Positions 25,441 to 50,088 of a stretch of DNA of 64,000 nt are shown one piece after another. The position numbers were made by a program, and so were the translations under genes. The stretch covers positions 56,482,001 through 56,546,000 of the forward strand of contig NC_083223.1 in the NCBI RefSeq assembly GCF_032191835.1, read 5' to 3'. The notes below the pieces were generated by a model. That model ran no database searches. It had not been told where the DNA came from and was given only the letters and a program-made list of their open reading frames with translations. Source of the DNA: Heteronotia binoei. Its lineage: Eukaryota. The stretch's first letter is position 1, and each line of letters starts with the position of its first letter.

Positions 25441-25808
25441 GACCATTGTATCACATGTAACTGAGCCAGCTGCAAGAACTGAACGAAACAAATAGGGAGC
25501 CGGTTGCCAGGCTCAACATAGACAATAAAATACTGCCTTCATTATCGTTGTCCAAGGAAGAGTGGGTGGAGCCACACTGCAAGGCTTTTGATGGTGTCCA
25601 TTGCTACAACCATAACAAGCCCAACAAAACTCTCTCTCTCTCTCTCTCTCTCTGTAGCAAGGCAAAATGTTCATACCTTCACTAAAACGTTGCTACTCTT
25701 AAAAGCACTCTTTGTAGCTCTCCTGATGGTGGGAACTGCGCAAAGGAAGCTCTGGCTCTTTCTTTCCTTCCCCGAGGCACGAGGAGGAGGAGGAACCTCA
25801 GCCATTCA

Positions 25809-26737
25809 CAGAGCCGGCGGGTTCATTAGGCAACATTTGGCAACTGCCTCAGGTGCCGGCTCTTCGGGGGCACATTGTTTCTGCTTCCTGAGGGGTTGGA
25901 GAAATTTTCTGGCCCCTCAGCAAGCAGAAACAAAGTGGGGCTTAACTTTCAGTCACCTGAGACTGAAAGTGCTGCTTTGTTTCTGCTTGCTGAGGCGTTG
26001 GAGAAATCTTCCAACCCGTTAGCAAGCAGAAACAATGCACTGGGCGCCCGGGATGGAAAGTGCCCCCTTGTTTCTGCTTGCTGAGGGATTGGTGAAATCT
26101 TCCACCCCCTTAGCAAGCAGAAACAAGGTGCCGGCGCTTACCATGAAGGTGCCGCTTGGCTTCTTTCAACCCGAAAGTGGCCTGTTGTCTTTTAAAAACT
26201 ATGCTTTTGGGAGGCTTCCAAGGAAGCCTAAAAAGAGTGTAGTGCAGGGGGAAAGTGGCGGCACAGCAGCACTCTTGTGCGCCACCTGCCGCTCTCTAGT
26301 TTCCCTTATGATGAGCATGAAAAAAACCGAAGGGCAGGCAGACATGGGCCAGCAGCTGTGGGAGGAGTGCGACTTGCGCTGATGGCTCGGCGCGCACCCA
26401 GTGCAAGGCCAGGACAAAGGCGGCCTCTTCCTTGGGCAGGCACAGCACGTCATCACGCAGGTAGGAGACGAGGCAGGCCAGCAGCAGCCACTCTAGCTGC
26501 ACACCCAGCCCATCAGAGCCAGCGGTGGCGTGGCGCAGAATGCTGTGGTGGGCGGCGATGGCGAGCGGTGCACACTTGAAGGTCCCAGTGAAGTCTTGCA
26601 TCTCAAGCGCCATGGCCCGCTCCAGGCACAACACCAGCCAGTCCATGCGCTTGTGGAAAAAAACCCAAAAGGGAGCTGGAAGGGGGGTGCGGTGCAGGGG
26701 TCTGCCTCTAGCAGCAGAACCCTTAGTGCTGGCCCTG
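25809..26737. mobile_element. 929-bp non-autonomous hAT (Tip100-like) carrying a captured gene fragment (Pack-hAT candidate)
   Basis: Perfect 8-bp TSD GCCATTCA (25801-25808, 26738-26745). TIRs CAGAGCCGGCG / CAGGGCCAGCA (8/11; all differences are transitions). Confidence 0.85.
26329..26655 (-). pseudogene. KLHL21: KLHL21 coding fragment (end of BTB and BACK domain), 109 codons without a stop
   Basis: ALEMQDFTGTFKCAPLAIAAHHSILRH...QLEWLLLACLVSYLRDDVLCLPKEEAAFVLALHWVRAEP...PQLLAHVCLPF aligns to recalled human KLHL21 CLDMQDFAEAFSCSGLASAAQRFILRH...QLERLPLARLLRYLRDDGLCVPKEEAAYQLALRWVRADP...PQLLEAVRLPF. Third codon positions are GC-rich. Confidence 0.85.
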
Positions 26738-27066
26738 GCCATTCATTGGAAGGAAGAGAGGCTTGTCTCAGTAGCTCTGCAGAGTGATTAATTGAGCCTG
26801 CGAACTTAAATCACCCAGCAGAGCTATAGAGCCAAGTTCCCTCATTGGCTGAGGCTGCTCCTCCCTCCTGCTCTCTTTGGGAAAAGGGAGGGGGGAGAGG
26901 GAAAGGCTGCTTTGTTGCTCTCGCTTATCTATGAAGAAACACAAAATGGCAACTGAAAAAAGCAGGCAAAGGAAAATGAAGCAGACAACAGCCAGTTGCT
27001 GGAGGGCCTGATTGGAGCCCTCTGCGGGCCTGATCTGGCCCCCAGGCCATATGTTTGACACCCCTG

Positions 27067-34859: not shown

Positions 34860-37800
34860 ATCACATTTCAGAGAGCTCTGAGAGAGAGCAGAGAAGCTCT
34901 GAGAGAGAGCAGAGAAATAGTGCTATAAAGGTGAGGTTTGGCTTTCTAAGCAGCTGGGGAAGTTGCTGAGAATTTCTGTGTTTGTGTGACTGCTGAAAAT
35001 TCTGAGTTTGTGGTTGCTGGGGAACTGCTGTCTGTTTGGTTTGAGTGGGTTGAAGGTGATCGAAGGTGATTGTTGCTGATTGATTAGGAGTAGCTATGTT
35101 CCCCACCCTCTTTGCATTATTAAGCTGAGCCTTGCCAGAGGCGTGAGAGCTAAAGGGCTCTTGGCCTGGGGGCTCTGTAAAAACCAGGAACCCAGATCCC
35201 TATTTCCTTGTGTTTCCAATAAGGTAAGTTGACCCTCCAGAAGGAGAGCCACATAAACAAACAGGATTTAAAAGGGGACTGTATATTTTTGGATAAAGCT
35301 GTCAAGAAAGTAGAATGCCAGCAGGGGGGTGGGGGCTTTCCAGTGTTTTGCACTGAGTGTCACATGTATGACTATCTGCCGACGCACAGAAGTCTTGGAT
35401 GTGTGCTTGATGCAAGGAGCTCCTGGTCCTCAGGGAACGAGTTTGTACCCTTGAGGCCTAGGTGACTGACCTGGAGAAGCAGAGACAGTCAGTTAGGCAC
35501 TCAAAGAAGACTCTTGGGGACGTATTAGATGAGCCCCACTCTGAACGTGGCAGCCCCGTTGCTGCCAGGGAGCGTGAGGGTCAAGAGGGAACAGGGCACC
35601 GTGCTGAGGATAAAGGGAATGTGCCCTCAGAAGGGACCTCTTCTTCAGTTGGTGAGCGGGTATCCTTTCATGCCAAGGAACCATCCCTGGGCAGGGAGAG
35701 AGGGGGAGTCTTGGTAGTTGGTGATTTGATCCTTAGGCAAGTAGACAGCTGGGTGGCAAAACCACGTACTGACCGTATGGTGACTTGCCTGCCTGGTGCA
35801 AAGGTAGCGGACATTACGCGTGTAGTAGATAGGCTGGTAGACAGTGCTGGGGAGGAGCCAGTGGTCATGGTGCATGTTGGCACCAATGATGTGGGGAAAT
35901 GCAGTCATGAGGTCCTGGAGGAAAAATTTAGGCTGCTAGACAGGAGACTTAAGGCCAGGACCTCCAAGGTAGCCTTCTCAGAAGTGCTACCTGTTCCATG
36001 TGCAGGGCTGGAGAGACAGGAACAAATTAGAAGTCTCAACATGTGGATGAGACGATGGTGTAGGGAGGAAGGGTTTAAGTTTGTTAGGCATTGGAATGCT
36101 TTCTGGAACAAGCAGGAGCTGTACAAGAGACGGTCTCCACTTGTCCCCAGATGGAACCAGTTGCTGGCGCTTAAAATCAAAAAGGTGGCAAAGCAGTTTT
36201 TGAACTAAATCTTGGGGGAAAGCCGACAGGAGATTAAATGTCTCTGGTTCGGGAGGACTCATCTCAAAGAGATGAAGGGTTAGCTCTTACTTTTCTACCA
36301 GGTAATGGATCAGAGTTGTCCACTGAGATGGTGATAAACAGTATGGAGTGTCTGCCAAAGTCTCGAGGTGGCAGGAGGAAGGTTGCGGACCTAACTTGCA
36401 TGGGAAATTATAGATGTTTATATACAAATGCTAGAAGTGTTCAAAGTAAAATTGGTGAGTTGGAATGTTTAGTGCTGGGGGAAAACGTAGACATTGTGGG
36501 AATTTCAGAAACTTGATGGAATGAGGAGAATCAGTGGGACACGGTGATTCCTGGATATAAGATATCGGAAGGATAGGGAGGGAAGGATTGGAGGTGGGGC
36601 GGCTCTGTATGTCAGAGAGGGTATACAGTCCAGTAAGACTGAGGTCAGAGAATTAGAGTCCCTTCTAGAAATGCTTTGGGTCGAAATAGAGGGCCCAAAA
36701 GGTAATTTAACTATGGGAGTTTGTTATCGCAACCAAATCAAAAGACAGAGGACGATTATAATACGATGGAAGGATTAAAGATAGCGGCTAAACATAAAAA
36801 CTGTGTCGTAATTGGTGATTTTAACTACCCGCAGATTGATTGGGTCAATACGTGTTCAGGTTGAGAGAAATAGATATAGTTTCTAGATGCTCTCAATGAC
36901 TGTGCTATGGAGCAGATGGTCACAGAACCTACCAGGGGTGGGGCGATCCTGGATTTGGTCCTAAGTAATGCCCAAGACTTGGTGAGAGATGTAAAAGTGA
37001 TTGTACCACTTGGAAGCAGTGACCATAACGTTATTGATTTCACCATTTGCATAAATAGGGAGTTGCCCCAAAAGACCAGCACAACCATGTTTAACTTTAA
37101 AAGGCGTAAATTCTCTGAGATGAGGCGGCATGTGAAGAGGAAATTGAAAGGAAAGGTAAATACAGTCAAAACCCTTGGGGAAGCTTGGAGGCTATTTAAA
37201 ACTACAATCCTAGAAGCTCAGATAAAATATATACCACAAGTTAGGAAAGGCACAAACAGGTATAAGAAAAGGCGTGCATGGTTAACAAACAAAGTAATGG
37301 AAACTGTAAAAGGTAAGGACTCTTTTAAGCGCTGGAAAGCTAGTCCAAGTGAAATTAATAAAAGGGAACACAGGCTGTGGCAAATCAAATGCAAGACTGT
37401 GATCAGGCAGGCAAAAAGGGACTATGAGGAGCATATTGCAAAAAAACATAAAGACCAACAATAAAAATTTCTTCAAATGTATTAGAAACAGGAAACCAGC
37501 CAGGGAGGCAGTGGGGCCCTTGGATGACCAAGGGGTAAAAGGATTACTGAAGGAAATGGCTGAGAAGTTGAATGCATTTTTTGCCTCCGTCTTCAATGTG
37601 GAAGATGAGAAGTGTTTGCCCGCTCCAGTACCACTTATTTTGGAAGGGATGTTGAAAGACCTGAGTCAGATTGAGGTGACAAGAGAGGAGGTCCTACAAC
37701 TGATAGACGAATTAAAATCTAATAAGTCACCAGGTCCGGATGGCATACATCCAAGAGTTCTGAAAGAACTCAAAGTTGAACTTGTGGATCTCCTGACAAA

Positions 37801-39102
37801 AATATGTAATCTTTCATTGAAATCTGCCTCTGTTCCTGAAGATTGGAAGGTAGCCAGTGTTACCCCCATCTTTAAAAAGGGTTCCAGAGGAGATCCAGGA
37901 AATTACAGGCCAGTCAGTCTGACTTCAATACTGGGAAAGTTGGTAGAAACCATTATCAAGGACAGAATGAGTAGGCACATTGATGAACATGAGTTATTTA
38001 GGAAGACTCAGCATGGGTTCTGTAAGGGAAGATCTTGCCTCACTAACCTGTTACAGTTCTTTGAGGGGGTGAACAAACATGTGAACAAAGGAGATCCAAT
38101 AGATGTCGTTTACCTTGACTTCCAGAAAGGTTTTGATAAAGTTCCTCATCAAAGGCTCCTTAGTAAGCTCGAGAGTCATGGAGTAAAAGGACACGTCCTC
38201 TTGTGGATCAAAAACTGGCTAATTAATAGGAAGCAGAGAGTGAGTATAAATGGGCAGTCTTCGCAGTGGAGGACGATAAGCAGTGGGGTGCCGCAGGGCT
38301 CAGTACTGGGTCCCATGCTCTTTAAGTTATTCATAAATAATTTGAAGTTGGGAGTAAGCAGTGAAGTGGCCAAGTTTGCAGATGACACTAAATTGTTCAG
38401 GGTGGTGAGAACCAGAGAGGAGTGTGAGGCACTCCAAAAGGATCTGTTGAGGCTGGGTGAGTGGGCGTCAACATGGCAGATGAGGTTCAGTGTGGCCAAG
38501 TGCAAAGTAATGCACATTGGGGCCAAGAATCCCAGCTACAAATACAAGTTGATGGGTTGTGAACTGGCAGAGACTGACCATGAGAGAGATCTTGATGTCG
38601 TGGTAGATAACTCACTGAAAATGTCAAGACAGTGTGCGATTGCAATAAAAAAGGCCAACGCCATGCTGGGAATTATTAGGAAGGGAATTGAAAACAAATC
38701 AGCCAGTATCATAATGCTCCTGTATAAATCGATGGTGCGATCTCATTTGGAATACTGTGTACAATTCTGGTCACCGCACCTCAGAAAGGATAATATAGCA
38801 TTGGAAAAAGTGCAGAAAAGGGCGACTAGAATGATTAAAGGTTTGGAACACTTTCCCTATGAAGAAAAGTTAAAATGCTTGGGGCTCTTTAGCTTGGAGA
38901 AACATCGACTGCGGGGTGACATGAACAGAGGTTTACAAGATTATGCATGGGATGGAGAAAGTAGAGAAAGAAGTACTTTTCTCCCTTTCTCACAATACAA
39001 GAACTCGTGGGCATTCAATGAAATTGCTGAGCAGTCAGGTTAAAATGGATAAAAGGAAGTACTTCTTCACCCAAAGGGTGATTAACATGTGGAATTCTCT
39101 GC

Positions 39103-47851: not shown

Positions 47852-49288
47852 TTATTTATTTATTTATTTATTTTGAGATTTATATTCCGCCCTTCCCACG
47901 AATGGCTCAGGGCGGCTTCCAACAATTTAATCAAACATAAAATTTAAACAATATTAAGTATAAAACAATTAAATATTTAAACAGTTAAAACTTTAAAACA
48001 GCATATTTCAATTTCCTGTAAACAGATGGCTGGCCAGTTACATCAGTTGTCATCATAGCTAGGTGTAGGCTAGCCGGAAGAGGGTCGTCTTACAGGCCCT
48101 GCGGAACTGCGCCAAGTCCCGCAGGGCCCTCACCTCTTCCGGCAGCTGATTCCACCATACGGGGGCCATAACGGAGAAAGCCCTTTCTAGTGGCTTTCAG
48201 ACGAGCTTCTTTTGGCCCGGGGATAGTGAGGAGATTTTGTGTTCCTGACCTCAGTGCTCTCTGGGGAACATGTGGGGAGAGACGGTCCTTCAGGTAGGCA
48301 GGTCCCAGGCCATATAGGGCTTTAAAGGTAATAACCAGCACCTTGTACCGGACTCGGTATATCACTGGAAGCCAGTGCAGAGTCCGGAGACCCAGCTGGA
48401 TGTGTCCCCACTTTGGGAGACCCAATAACAGCTGGGCCGCGGCATTCTGCACCAGCTGCAGTTTCCGGGTCCGGGACAAGGGCAGCCCCATGTAGAGGGC
48501 ATTGCAGTAGTCCAACCTTGAGGTGACCGTAGCATGGATCACTGTTGCTAGGTCGTCGCGTTCCAGAAAGGGGGCCAGCTGCCTTGCCCGCCTAAGATGA
48601 AAAAATGCAGACTTGGCAGCGGCTGCTATCTGAGCCTCCATCCTTAAGGAAGGCTCCAACAGCACCCCCAAGCTCTTGACCCTGTCCGCCGCCATCAGCG
48701 GCGCACCATCAAAAGCCGGTAGGGAGATCCCCCTCCCCGGGCCGCGGTGACCCAAGCAAAGGACCTCTGTCTTCGTAGGATTTAGCTTCAGCCCACTCAG
48801 TCTGAGCCACTCAGCCACGGCCCGTAATGCCTGGTCAAGATTTTCCGGGGCACAGACAGGTTGGCCATCCATCAGTAGATAGAGTTGGGTGTCATCAGCA
48901 TACTGGTGACATCCCAGCCCATACCTTCGGGCAATCTGGGCAAGAGGCCGCATGTAGATGTTAAATAACATCGGGGAGAGAACCGCCCCCTGGGGCACAC
49001 CACAATCAAGTGTGCGCCTCCGGGATAGCTCCCCCCCAATTGCGACCCTTTGTCCCCGACCTTCCAGGAAAGAGGAAAGCCACTGTAAGGCCAACCCCTG
49101 AATCCCCGCGTCGGCGAGGCAGCACGTCAGTAGCCGATGGTCGACCGTGTCGAACGCAGCCGACAGGTCCAACAACATCAGCACCGCCGAGCCACCCCGA
49201 TCCAGGTGCCGTTGAAGGTCATCCACCAGGGCAACCAACACTGTCTCCGTCCCGTGTCCCGGGCGAAATCCGGACTGAAATGGGTCAA
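47852..49288 (-). mobile_element. Young 5'-truncated L2 LINE inserted in Gypsy gag
   Basis: Minus ORF 48090-49388 with DPFQSGFRPGHGTET, LLDLSAAFDTVDH, YADD. (TAAA)n tail. AGGAAT direct repeat at 47846 and 49302. Confidence 0.95.
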
Positions 49289-50088
49289 GAGTGCCCACCC
49301 AAGGAATGGGGCCGAGAGTGCCCACCTGGCCACGAGCGACAGAGAAACCAGCCAACACCAAGTGTGCCAGCTGTGGGGATCCACACAAGTGCCGGGACTG
49401 CTCCTATCGCAACGTGGACTGCAGGAACTGTGGAAGAGTGGGCCACATAGCGTGGGCTTGCCGGGCCAAGGCCACCAACCACGGCTCGACCGATGCCTAT
49501 TCGACCGCATCGACTAGCCTGCAGGTAATGAACTTGCCCCTCACCACCCCAGATAAGGTCAGGGTGTCGGTCCTAATTAAGGGCACTCCATGCCTAATGG
49601 AGCTGGACTCGTGCTTCTTCATCTCCATAATTTCGGAGGAGTCTCTAAGAAAACTTTGTCCTCGACTGCGACCGGCGGACCTCATACTGCGGGACTTCCA
49701 AAAAAACCCTGTACAGATTTTGGGTTGGGTCACTCTGAAACAATGAGTCCCCCACCTCCATGAGCAGGTGCTTTAAAACAGCCCAGGAAGTGTCTCGTCT
49801 GTGCCAGCAAGTAGCACTCATTCAGAGCACCCCGACTGGCCAGTGTAAACAACAGAAAAAATGTGTGTGGGGGGGGGGGGGGGATGAGCAATCAAAATGA
49901 ATAATCAGAATCAGTTCCAATGTATGTAGCAAGAACACTGCAAGGCTTTATCCATTAAATGTAGGCGAGACACTGGGAATAAGCCCCATCGAATATATTG
50001 ATGCATACCAATGTAAAGATGTTTAAGAGGGGAAGGAAAGCAGGGAATATGTAGAAAGCCCATCTAAGCTAAACTGTACTGTGCTGGC

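Follow-up and report, generated by a model that had tools for sequence, protein, structure and literature searches.

We found that a 929-bp non-autonomous hAT-type transposon within the genome of a gecko, Heteronotia binoei, carries a fragment of exon 1 of the host gene KLHL21, and that further loci of the same genome carry the same fragment between the same junctions. We hold it probable (roughly 0.9) that capture, mobilization and neutral decay form a single account of these loci, which would then represent a multicopy Pack-hAT subfamily. According to this account, 313–314 bp of KLHL21's first exon, which is GC-rich, would have entered a high-copy non-autonomous hAT-type element on a single occasion; the likeliest route is a template switch while the element was replicated or a double-strand break was repaired. 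The chimera, having both termini, would then have been mobilized to at least seven loci by a hAT transposase acting in trans, apparently in one burst. One copy would have landed in an older, truncated hAT MITE, and the cargo copies would subsequently have decayed neutrally, without detectable function. This nested copy lies in the stretch of 64,000 nucleotides that we analyzed (contig NC_083223.1, positions 56,482,001 to 56,546,000; hereafter the window), and its features are collected in Table 1 together with those of the other cargo-bearing copies.

The element was read directly from the sequence as a 929-bp unit at window positions 25809–26737. Its boundaries read ...CCTCA GCCATTCA / CAGAGCCGGCGGG ... 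GTGCTGGCCCTG / GCCATTCA TTGG..., with slashes at the two ends of the element. An earlier note on this DNA had described such a unit, bounded by terminal inverted repeats (TIRs) and a perfect 8-bp target site duplication (TSD), and both were confirmed: the 10-bp TIRs (CAGAGCCGGC versus CAGGGCCAGC) are identical at 8 of 10 positions, and the two copies of the TSD GCCATTCA agree at 8/8, a match expected by chance at a fixed position with a probability of ~1.5e-5.

Table 1 Features of the 929-bp element, its host repeat and the other cargo-bearing copies. Positions without a contig prefix are window positions; query positions refer to the 929-bp element.
Feature	Position	Strand	Observation
Outer hAT MITE, left part	25605-25800		paralogs align from 25605 on at 89-93% identity
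Left TSD copy	25801-25808		GCCATTCA; single in 13 outer-element paralogs
5′ TIR	25809-25818	+	CAGAGCCGGC; same terminus in other family members
Three subterminal palindromic units, each ~65 bp	25871-25937, 25973-26039, 26066-26128		inverted repeats; repeated matches in other copies to query positions 63-326
Internal backbone, common to cargo-free members	26137-26310		query positions 329-506
Left junction segment, ATGAGCATGAAAAAAACC	26311-26328		second copy of the element sequence standing right of the cargo, from alignment of Pack and non-Pack members
Captured cargo, KLHL21 exon 1	26328-26641	-	83% identity to G000:C18:21770143-21770456; Pfam BACK
3′ arm of the element	26642-26727		query positions 834-919; cargo-free members match 837/849-929
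Right junction segment, ATGCGCTTGTGGAAAAAAACC	26645-26665		original element sequence, duplicated at the left junction
3′ TIR	26728-26737	-	GCTGGCCCTG, reverse complement CAGGGCCAGC
Right TSD copy	26738-26745		GCCATTCA
Outer hAT MITE, right part	26746-27066		ends in terminus ...GTTTGACACCCCTG
Cargo-bearing copy, complete, 868 bp	C1:214087038-214087905		TSD CCTCCTCT / CCTCCCCT
Cargo-bearing copy, complete, extra palindromic units	C6:61881730-61882854		TSD TGCTGCCG / TGCTGCAG
Cargo-bearing copy with internal deletion	C5:147914855-147915527		TSD GGTATGAG / GGTATGAG
Cargo-bearing copy, 5′-truncated, 3′ tip lost	C11:83673094-83673675		TSD not determinable
Cargo-bearing copy, truncated at both ends	C3:99292317-99292813		TSD not determinable
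Cargo-bearing remnant across the right junction	C4:54293575-54293728		TSD not determinable

When the 929-bp element was used as a query against this genome, ~1,627 first-look candidates were obtained, and the best 40 of these were scored. Typical members of this inner family match only query positions 1–506 and ~849–929, with a number of palindromic units that differs from member to member. The cargo is absent from most of them, positions 520–833 finding no match there, and the cargo is enclosed by transposon sequence, since query positions 1–506 and 834–929 match cargo-free members. The family termini read CAGAGCCGGCG... and ...CGCCGGCCCTG, with a TIR consensus of CAGRGCCGGC, and among the five members whose TSDs were checked, one of them cargo-bearing, the duplication matched at 8/8 in three and at 7/8 in two. 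Elements of the hAT superfamily have short TIRs starting with YARNG, and the termini of the inner element (CAGAGCCGGC, CAGGGCCAGC) fit this start. Judging from the TSD length of 8 bp and the CAGRG termini, the inner family is therefore hAT-like. The hAT dimerization domain (PF05699) gave 2,623 first-look candidates in the genome, and dozens of the matches lie inside uninterrupted frames of ~940 aa (for example at C10:48526048, C8:81710164 and C1:35329283), so that an autonomous hAT family seems to have been active here in recent times.

The unit had also been proposed to sit inside another hAT whose sequence resumes on both sides, and the two flanks indeed proved to be parts of one repeat. This outer family is non-autonomous, ~1.33 kb long, with the TIR CAGGGGTGTCAAAC and 8-bp TSDs (8/8 in three paralogs and 7/8 in three more), and the flanks, searched separately, gave >3,000 first-look candidates genome-wide. 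Because its paralogs extend further left, the window copy of the outer element is 5′-truncated at 25605; a (CT)12 run at 25630–25653 lies within its left part. At many loci the matches to the left and right flanks overlap by exactly 8 bp, and a query in which the flanks were joined as an empty site aligned without a break to at least 13 paralogs at 89–93% identity. All 13 aligned paralogs have a single, uninterrupted 8-mer at the site (GCCATTCA in 10, a one-base variant in 3) and thus serve as empty sites. Given the TSD, these empty paralogous sites and the existence of other cargo-bearing copies, mis-assembly of the 929-bp unit appears very unlikely. The outer copy diverges by 3.8% at non-CpG sites from a consensus that is itself biased, and the private non-CpG divergence of the cargo is ~5%; these values are equal within sampling error, and the chronology of the nested insertion is therefore uninformative. 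KLHL21 itself has an element related to the outer repeat ~800 bp upstream of its start codon.

The assignment of the cargo to KLHL21, which the earlier note had proposed, held up in the protein comparisons. In this genome the cargo peptide has its best non-self match in an open exon of 483 aa on contig 18 (E 3.6e-41), other KLHL-like matches being far weaker (E 5e-5 and 4e-4), and the product of this exon, counted from its Met, is 84–86% identical to the named KLHL21 proteins of birds, Thamnophis and Hemicordylus. The window peptide is itself 64% identical to residues 121–220 of Thamnophis KLHL21 (E 4e-37). A host-gene fragment is present as had been proposed, at a length of 313–314 bp or 104 codons rather than 327 bp and 109 aa; it occupies query positions 520–833 on the minus strand and shares 83% nucleotide identity over 314 bp, and 74% amino-acid identity, with its parent on contig 18. 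Two further searches added little: a word-index protein search with a 119-aa fragment gave no match at E ≤ 1e-3, the fragment being too short and too diverged for the index, and a PDB sequence search returned a weak KLHL3 match alone (E 0.23), which is uninformative beyond a fold family of the BTB-BACK type.

In the parent protein, Pfam places BTB at residues 19–122, BACK at 132–235 and the first Kelch motif at 281–316. The cargo corresponds to parental residues 121–224, that is, the BTB–BACK linker and most of BACK with essentially no BTB, so that only the BACK half of what had been called a BTB/BACK segment stands. Pfam BACK (PF07707, E 5.9e-9) is the only domain detected in the 148-aa open reading frame (ORF) on the minus strand at 26296–26742, and the combination of BTB, BACK and Kelch that makes up the gene is not found there. 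The ATG that opens this ORF (26740–26742) comes from the host repeat and the right-hand TSD, outside both the element and the cargo; the 148-aa ORF therefore arose by chance, through fusion of sequences on the two sides of the insertion boundary. The parental segment has 78% GC and 55 CpGs in 313 bp and belongs to a first-exon CpG island.

Three other KLHL21-like matches were considered as Pack copies and set aside. At C5:158236791-158236895 and C3:119918364-119918464, the match (75–80% nucleotide identity) runs past the cargo boundary and reaches into the 'LPFVRRFYLL' region; both loci probably belong to the exons of KLHL paralogs. The third match, at C4:138805044, belongs to a separate, younger duplicate of the KLHL21 5′ region that is not bounded by inner-MITE termini. 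This partial duplicate (G000:C4, ~138,803,917-138,805,135) is ~1.25 kb long, 94% identical to the contig 18 locus, and spans ~800 bp upstream of the ATG and the first ~150 codons, which encode the BTB region. One of its homology boundaries falls 21 bp inside the terminus of the CAGGAGTGTCGAAC-type hAT MITE upstream of KLHL21, and the copy may have arisen by segmental duplication or by a further capture associated with a transposon.

Both capture junctions are identical in all cargo-bearing copies. The left junction reads ...AAAAAAAC / GAAGGGCAGG and the right one ...CCAGCCAG / TCCATG, which may also be written ...GCCAGCCAG / TCCATGYGC..., whereas the cargo-free members read ...CCTTACGATG-ATGTCACTTTTAGTGATGTCATCGTGGCRYGCACT-ATGYGCRYGYGAAAAAAAAC-AAAAGGGAGCTGG... 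An internal hairpin of the cargo-free members (ATGTCAC...GTGATGTCAT) is deleted in the cargo-bearing copies, and a segment of ~20 bp, ATGYGCRYG(YG)AAAAAAAC, flanks the cargo on both sides (window 26311–26328 and 26645–26665). The left junction shows a single nucleotide (C) of microhomology, and none is evident at the right. The presence of the same two junctions in all cargo-bearing copies argues for a single capture, and the combination of a bracketing duplication with the deletion of the hairpin suggests that a template switch took place in the course of repair or replication, a mechanism that we infer from the anatomy of this one pair of junctions. A polymerase copying the element would have jumped to KLHL21 exon 1, copied ~314 nt there and returned to the element ~20 nt upstream of the point at which it had left; such an event could be either abortive gap repair (SDSA) or template switching at a replication fork. 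The cargo would in this way have taken the place of the internal hairpin, bracketed by a duplicated element segment of ~20 bp.

The proposal that a host exon fragment was packaged in a hAT and then amplified as a family was borne out by the search for other copies. Including the window, the cargo is present at no fewer than seven loci, and the six further carriers have the same junctions; since the best candidates were scored, these counts are lower bounds. Both termini are kept in four of the seven (the window copy and three others), each of which has a different 8-bp TSD, and in the three end-complete copies outside the window the TSD matches at 7/8, 7/8 and 8/8. The 600-bp flanks of different copies showed no mutual similarity at E ≤ 1e-5, as expected of independent integrations rather than segmental duplicates. 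Taken together, the common junctions, the different TSDs and the unrelated flanks indicate one capture followed by transposition. TIR-transposon sequence to either side of non-transposon DNA, an unambiguous parental copy elsewhere in the genome and, for the multicopy class, one chimera at several loci with distinct TSDs are the features that Tan et al. (2021) use for Pack-hATs, and all three were found here. The mobilization was presumably effected in trans by a specific hAT transposase.

The tree of the copies against the parental exon, which had been suggested as a way to date the capture, is a star without any supported internal fork, in which the branch of the gene measures 0.046 versus 0.13–0.31 for the branches of the copies. 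Pairwise divergence between copies is 19–24%, and more than half of the CpGs have been lost (55 in the parent versus 16–26 in the copies). At non-CpG sites the K2P distance is 6–10% between copy and gene and 9–15% between copy and copy. At seven sites the present-day gene differs from almost every copy, and these may be either changes of the founder or later changes in the gene. Private non-CpG changes numbered 20/373 at first, 22/455 at second and 27/351 at third codon positions (5.4, 4.8 and 7.7%; chi-square ~3.0, 2 df, p ~0.2), and this even spread indicates that there is no codon-position constraint. A stop codon or a frameshifting indel interrupts four of six copies; the frame is open in the window copy (104 codons) and in the second copy on C1, which is unremarkable at this GC content. 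When each copy was compared with the gene, dN/dS ranged from 0.21 to 0.43, which taken at face value would imply constraint. Values below 1 were not accepted as a sign of selection, however, because the figure is confounded by the constrained branch of the gene itself and by heavy CpG decay at third positions. As far as their sequences go, the cargo copies are decaying passengers with no sign of function. With 1–2e-9 substitutions per site per year, a rate that is assumed and not measured in this species, the private non-CpG divergence of ~5.9% would date the burst, very roughly, to 30–60 million years ago. In two metatranscriptomic runs, contigs fell heavily on the outer repeat, mostly on other copies of it, some of them bridging the empty site. 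No RNA contig of these two runs (8% and 7% word share) lay on 26296–26679, and no RNA run was found to contain the cargo by itself, a result that weighs neither way.

These data bear on several other ways in which a KLHL21 fragment might have come to lie inside a MITE. The cargo could have entered a resident MITE once, by gap filling independent of transposition, leaving a single-copy Pack-TIR that was never mobilized. Although this is the common route to Pack-TIRs in animals, where 4 of 370 are multicopy (Tan et al. 2021, PMC8277862), it is extremely improbable for a cargo that occurs at seven loci with identical junctions and that lies, in four of the copies, between both termini, with flanks that are unrelated and 8-bp TSDs that are distinct. 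Several copies could likewise result without any transposition if one chimeric locus had been duplicated, whether segmentally or by the assembly. Nothing specific speaks for it beyond the general possibility of such events in large, repeat-rich assemblies, and we find it hardly credible: homology between the copies ends exactly at the TIRs, their 600-bp flanks share nothing at E ≤ 1e-5, each complete copy has an 8-bp TSD of its own, and the pairwise divergence of 19–24% rules out recent assembly duplicates. Insertion of a KLHL21 retrocopy, that is, a fragment of a processed pseudogene put into the MITE by LINE machinery, might be suspected from the A-rich runs on both sides of the cargo and from the LINE reverse-transcriptase ORFs within the window. 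Yet the A-run belongs to the MITE and is present in cargo-free members, and the run at the 3′ end of the cargo was copied from the MITE. Read along the coding (minus) strand, moreover, the A-runs are T-runs, with no poly(A) after the coding sense, and the cargo is internal to one exon, with neither an mRNA 3′ end nor an exon junction. We accordingly give a retrocopy almost no credence.

A different question is whether the cargo, however acquired, has been put to use, either as an exapted BACK mini-ORF or by giving rise to antisense or small RNAs that act on KLHL21, with some of the copies under selection. The 104 open codons of the window copy within the 148-aa ORF, the one other intact copy and the dN/dS values relative to the gene speak for such a reading. 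Against it stand the four broken copies among six, the even distribution of private non-CpG changes over codon positions and the loss of most CpGs. Long ORFs are, in addition, expected by chance at 65–78% GC, and other frames are open here too; the lack of an RNA contig on the cargo in the two RNA runs is a weak negative. No autonomous activity is known for a BACK domain lacking both BTB and Kelch. A functional cargo is thus most unlikely, and neutral decay of a mobilized Pack-hAT cargo remains the preferred reading.

Animal genomes have been surveyed for gene capture of this kind: in 100 of them, Tan et al. (2021, Nat Commun, PMC8277862) found 370 Pack-TIRs, 208 of them associated with hATs, and the earlier note overstated the case in calling such capture rarely described in amniotes. 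Of the four multicopy cases, three are from Xenopus tropicalis and one from the American alligator; the Pack-hAT-N8_XT of X. tropicalis has three copies with distinct TSDs and carries 291 bp of 5′ UTR, while the only lizard surveyed (anoCar2) yielded zero Pack-TIRs (PMC8277862). Replication-fork template switching was proposed for the multicopy Pack-TIRs (PMC8277862). The gecko subfamily resembles these vertebrate multicopy Pack-hATs in having both TIRs, a few hundred bp of a host gene with an identifiable parent, and copies with distinct 8-bp TSDs on several chromosomes. It differs from the cases of that survey in its squamate host and, relative to the frog Pack-hAT-N8_XT, in its coding cargo (the BACK region of KLHL21 versus 5′ UTR) and its copy number (at least 7 versus 3); it is also old, with ~6% private non-CpG divergence, whereas the pipeline of Tan et al. 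targeted young cases. What is new is the squamate host, the coding cargo and a copy number above that of the published frog example, the process of gene capture itself being already cataloged in animals. Capture of gene fragments by DNA transposons is a recognized route of exon shuffling in plants, while the animal catalog is recent and consists almost entirely of single-copy, transposition-independent cases. The gecko subfamily adds an amniote case in which every step is legible, from the parental exon, the junctions and the cargo-free relatives to the seven copies and the nested insertion with its empty sites.

The nearest mechanistic parallel comes from plants. Maize Ds elements that contain gene fragments or filler DNA are said to have been described by Du et al. 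in 2011 as products of abortive gap repair of Ac/Ds, and the abortive-gap-repair model is reportedly that of Rubin and Levy. As in maize Ds, internal sequence of a hAT was here replaced by foreign DNA, with short junction duplications as the signature of template switching in repair; unlike in the gecko, where the mechanism would follow from one pair of junctions, the plant has a known autonomous partner, Ac. With plant Pack-MULEs and Pack-CACTA elements (PMC8903248; PMC5861414) the subfamily shares GC-rich gene fragments between TIRs, their subsequent amplification and the non-functional state of most copies; it is unlike the Pack-MULEs in being a hAT with an 8-bp TSD instead of a Mutator element with 9–10 bp, in its far smaller measured scale and in its animal genome. 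Among squamates, the 'hobo' hATs of Anolis incorporate filler DNA (Novick et al. 2011, PMC3014272) and are thus also hATs with captured internal DNA, but their filler consists mostly of other transposable elements; we found no mention of exon, host-gene or gene-fragment filler in that paper.

The cargo is first-exon, CpG-island DNA, it is present in at least seven copies, and many hAT frames in the genome are apparently intact. On these grounds one might tentatively suppose that hAT MITE families of this gecko repeatedly capture and amplify CpG-island or first-exon DNA throughout the genome, a reading that we consider possible but rather doubtful. If true, it would provide a vertebrate counterpart of the rice Pack-MULEs and allow tests, in an amniote, of the mechanism by which DNA transposons shuffle exons and of its consequences. 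The subfamily is of value because it documents an example, can serve to date hAT activity in geckos and hints at a Pack-hAT phenomenon that may be larger in this genome.

The window contains LINE-type ORFs as well. Reverse-transcriptase domains (PF00078) were detected at 37424–39043 on the plus strand and at 48090–49388 on the minus strand, and an ORF at 35462–36208 on the plus strand, upstream of the former, has a GDSL-esterase-like domain, as found in ORF1 of some LINEs of the CR1/L2 type.
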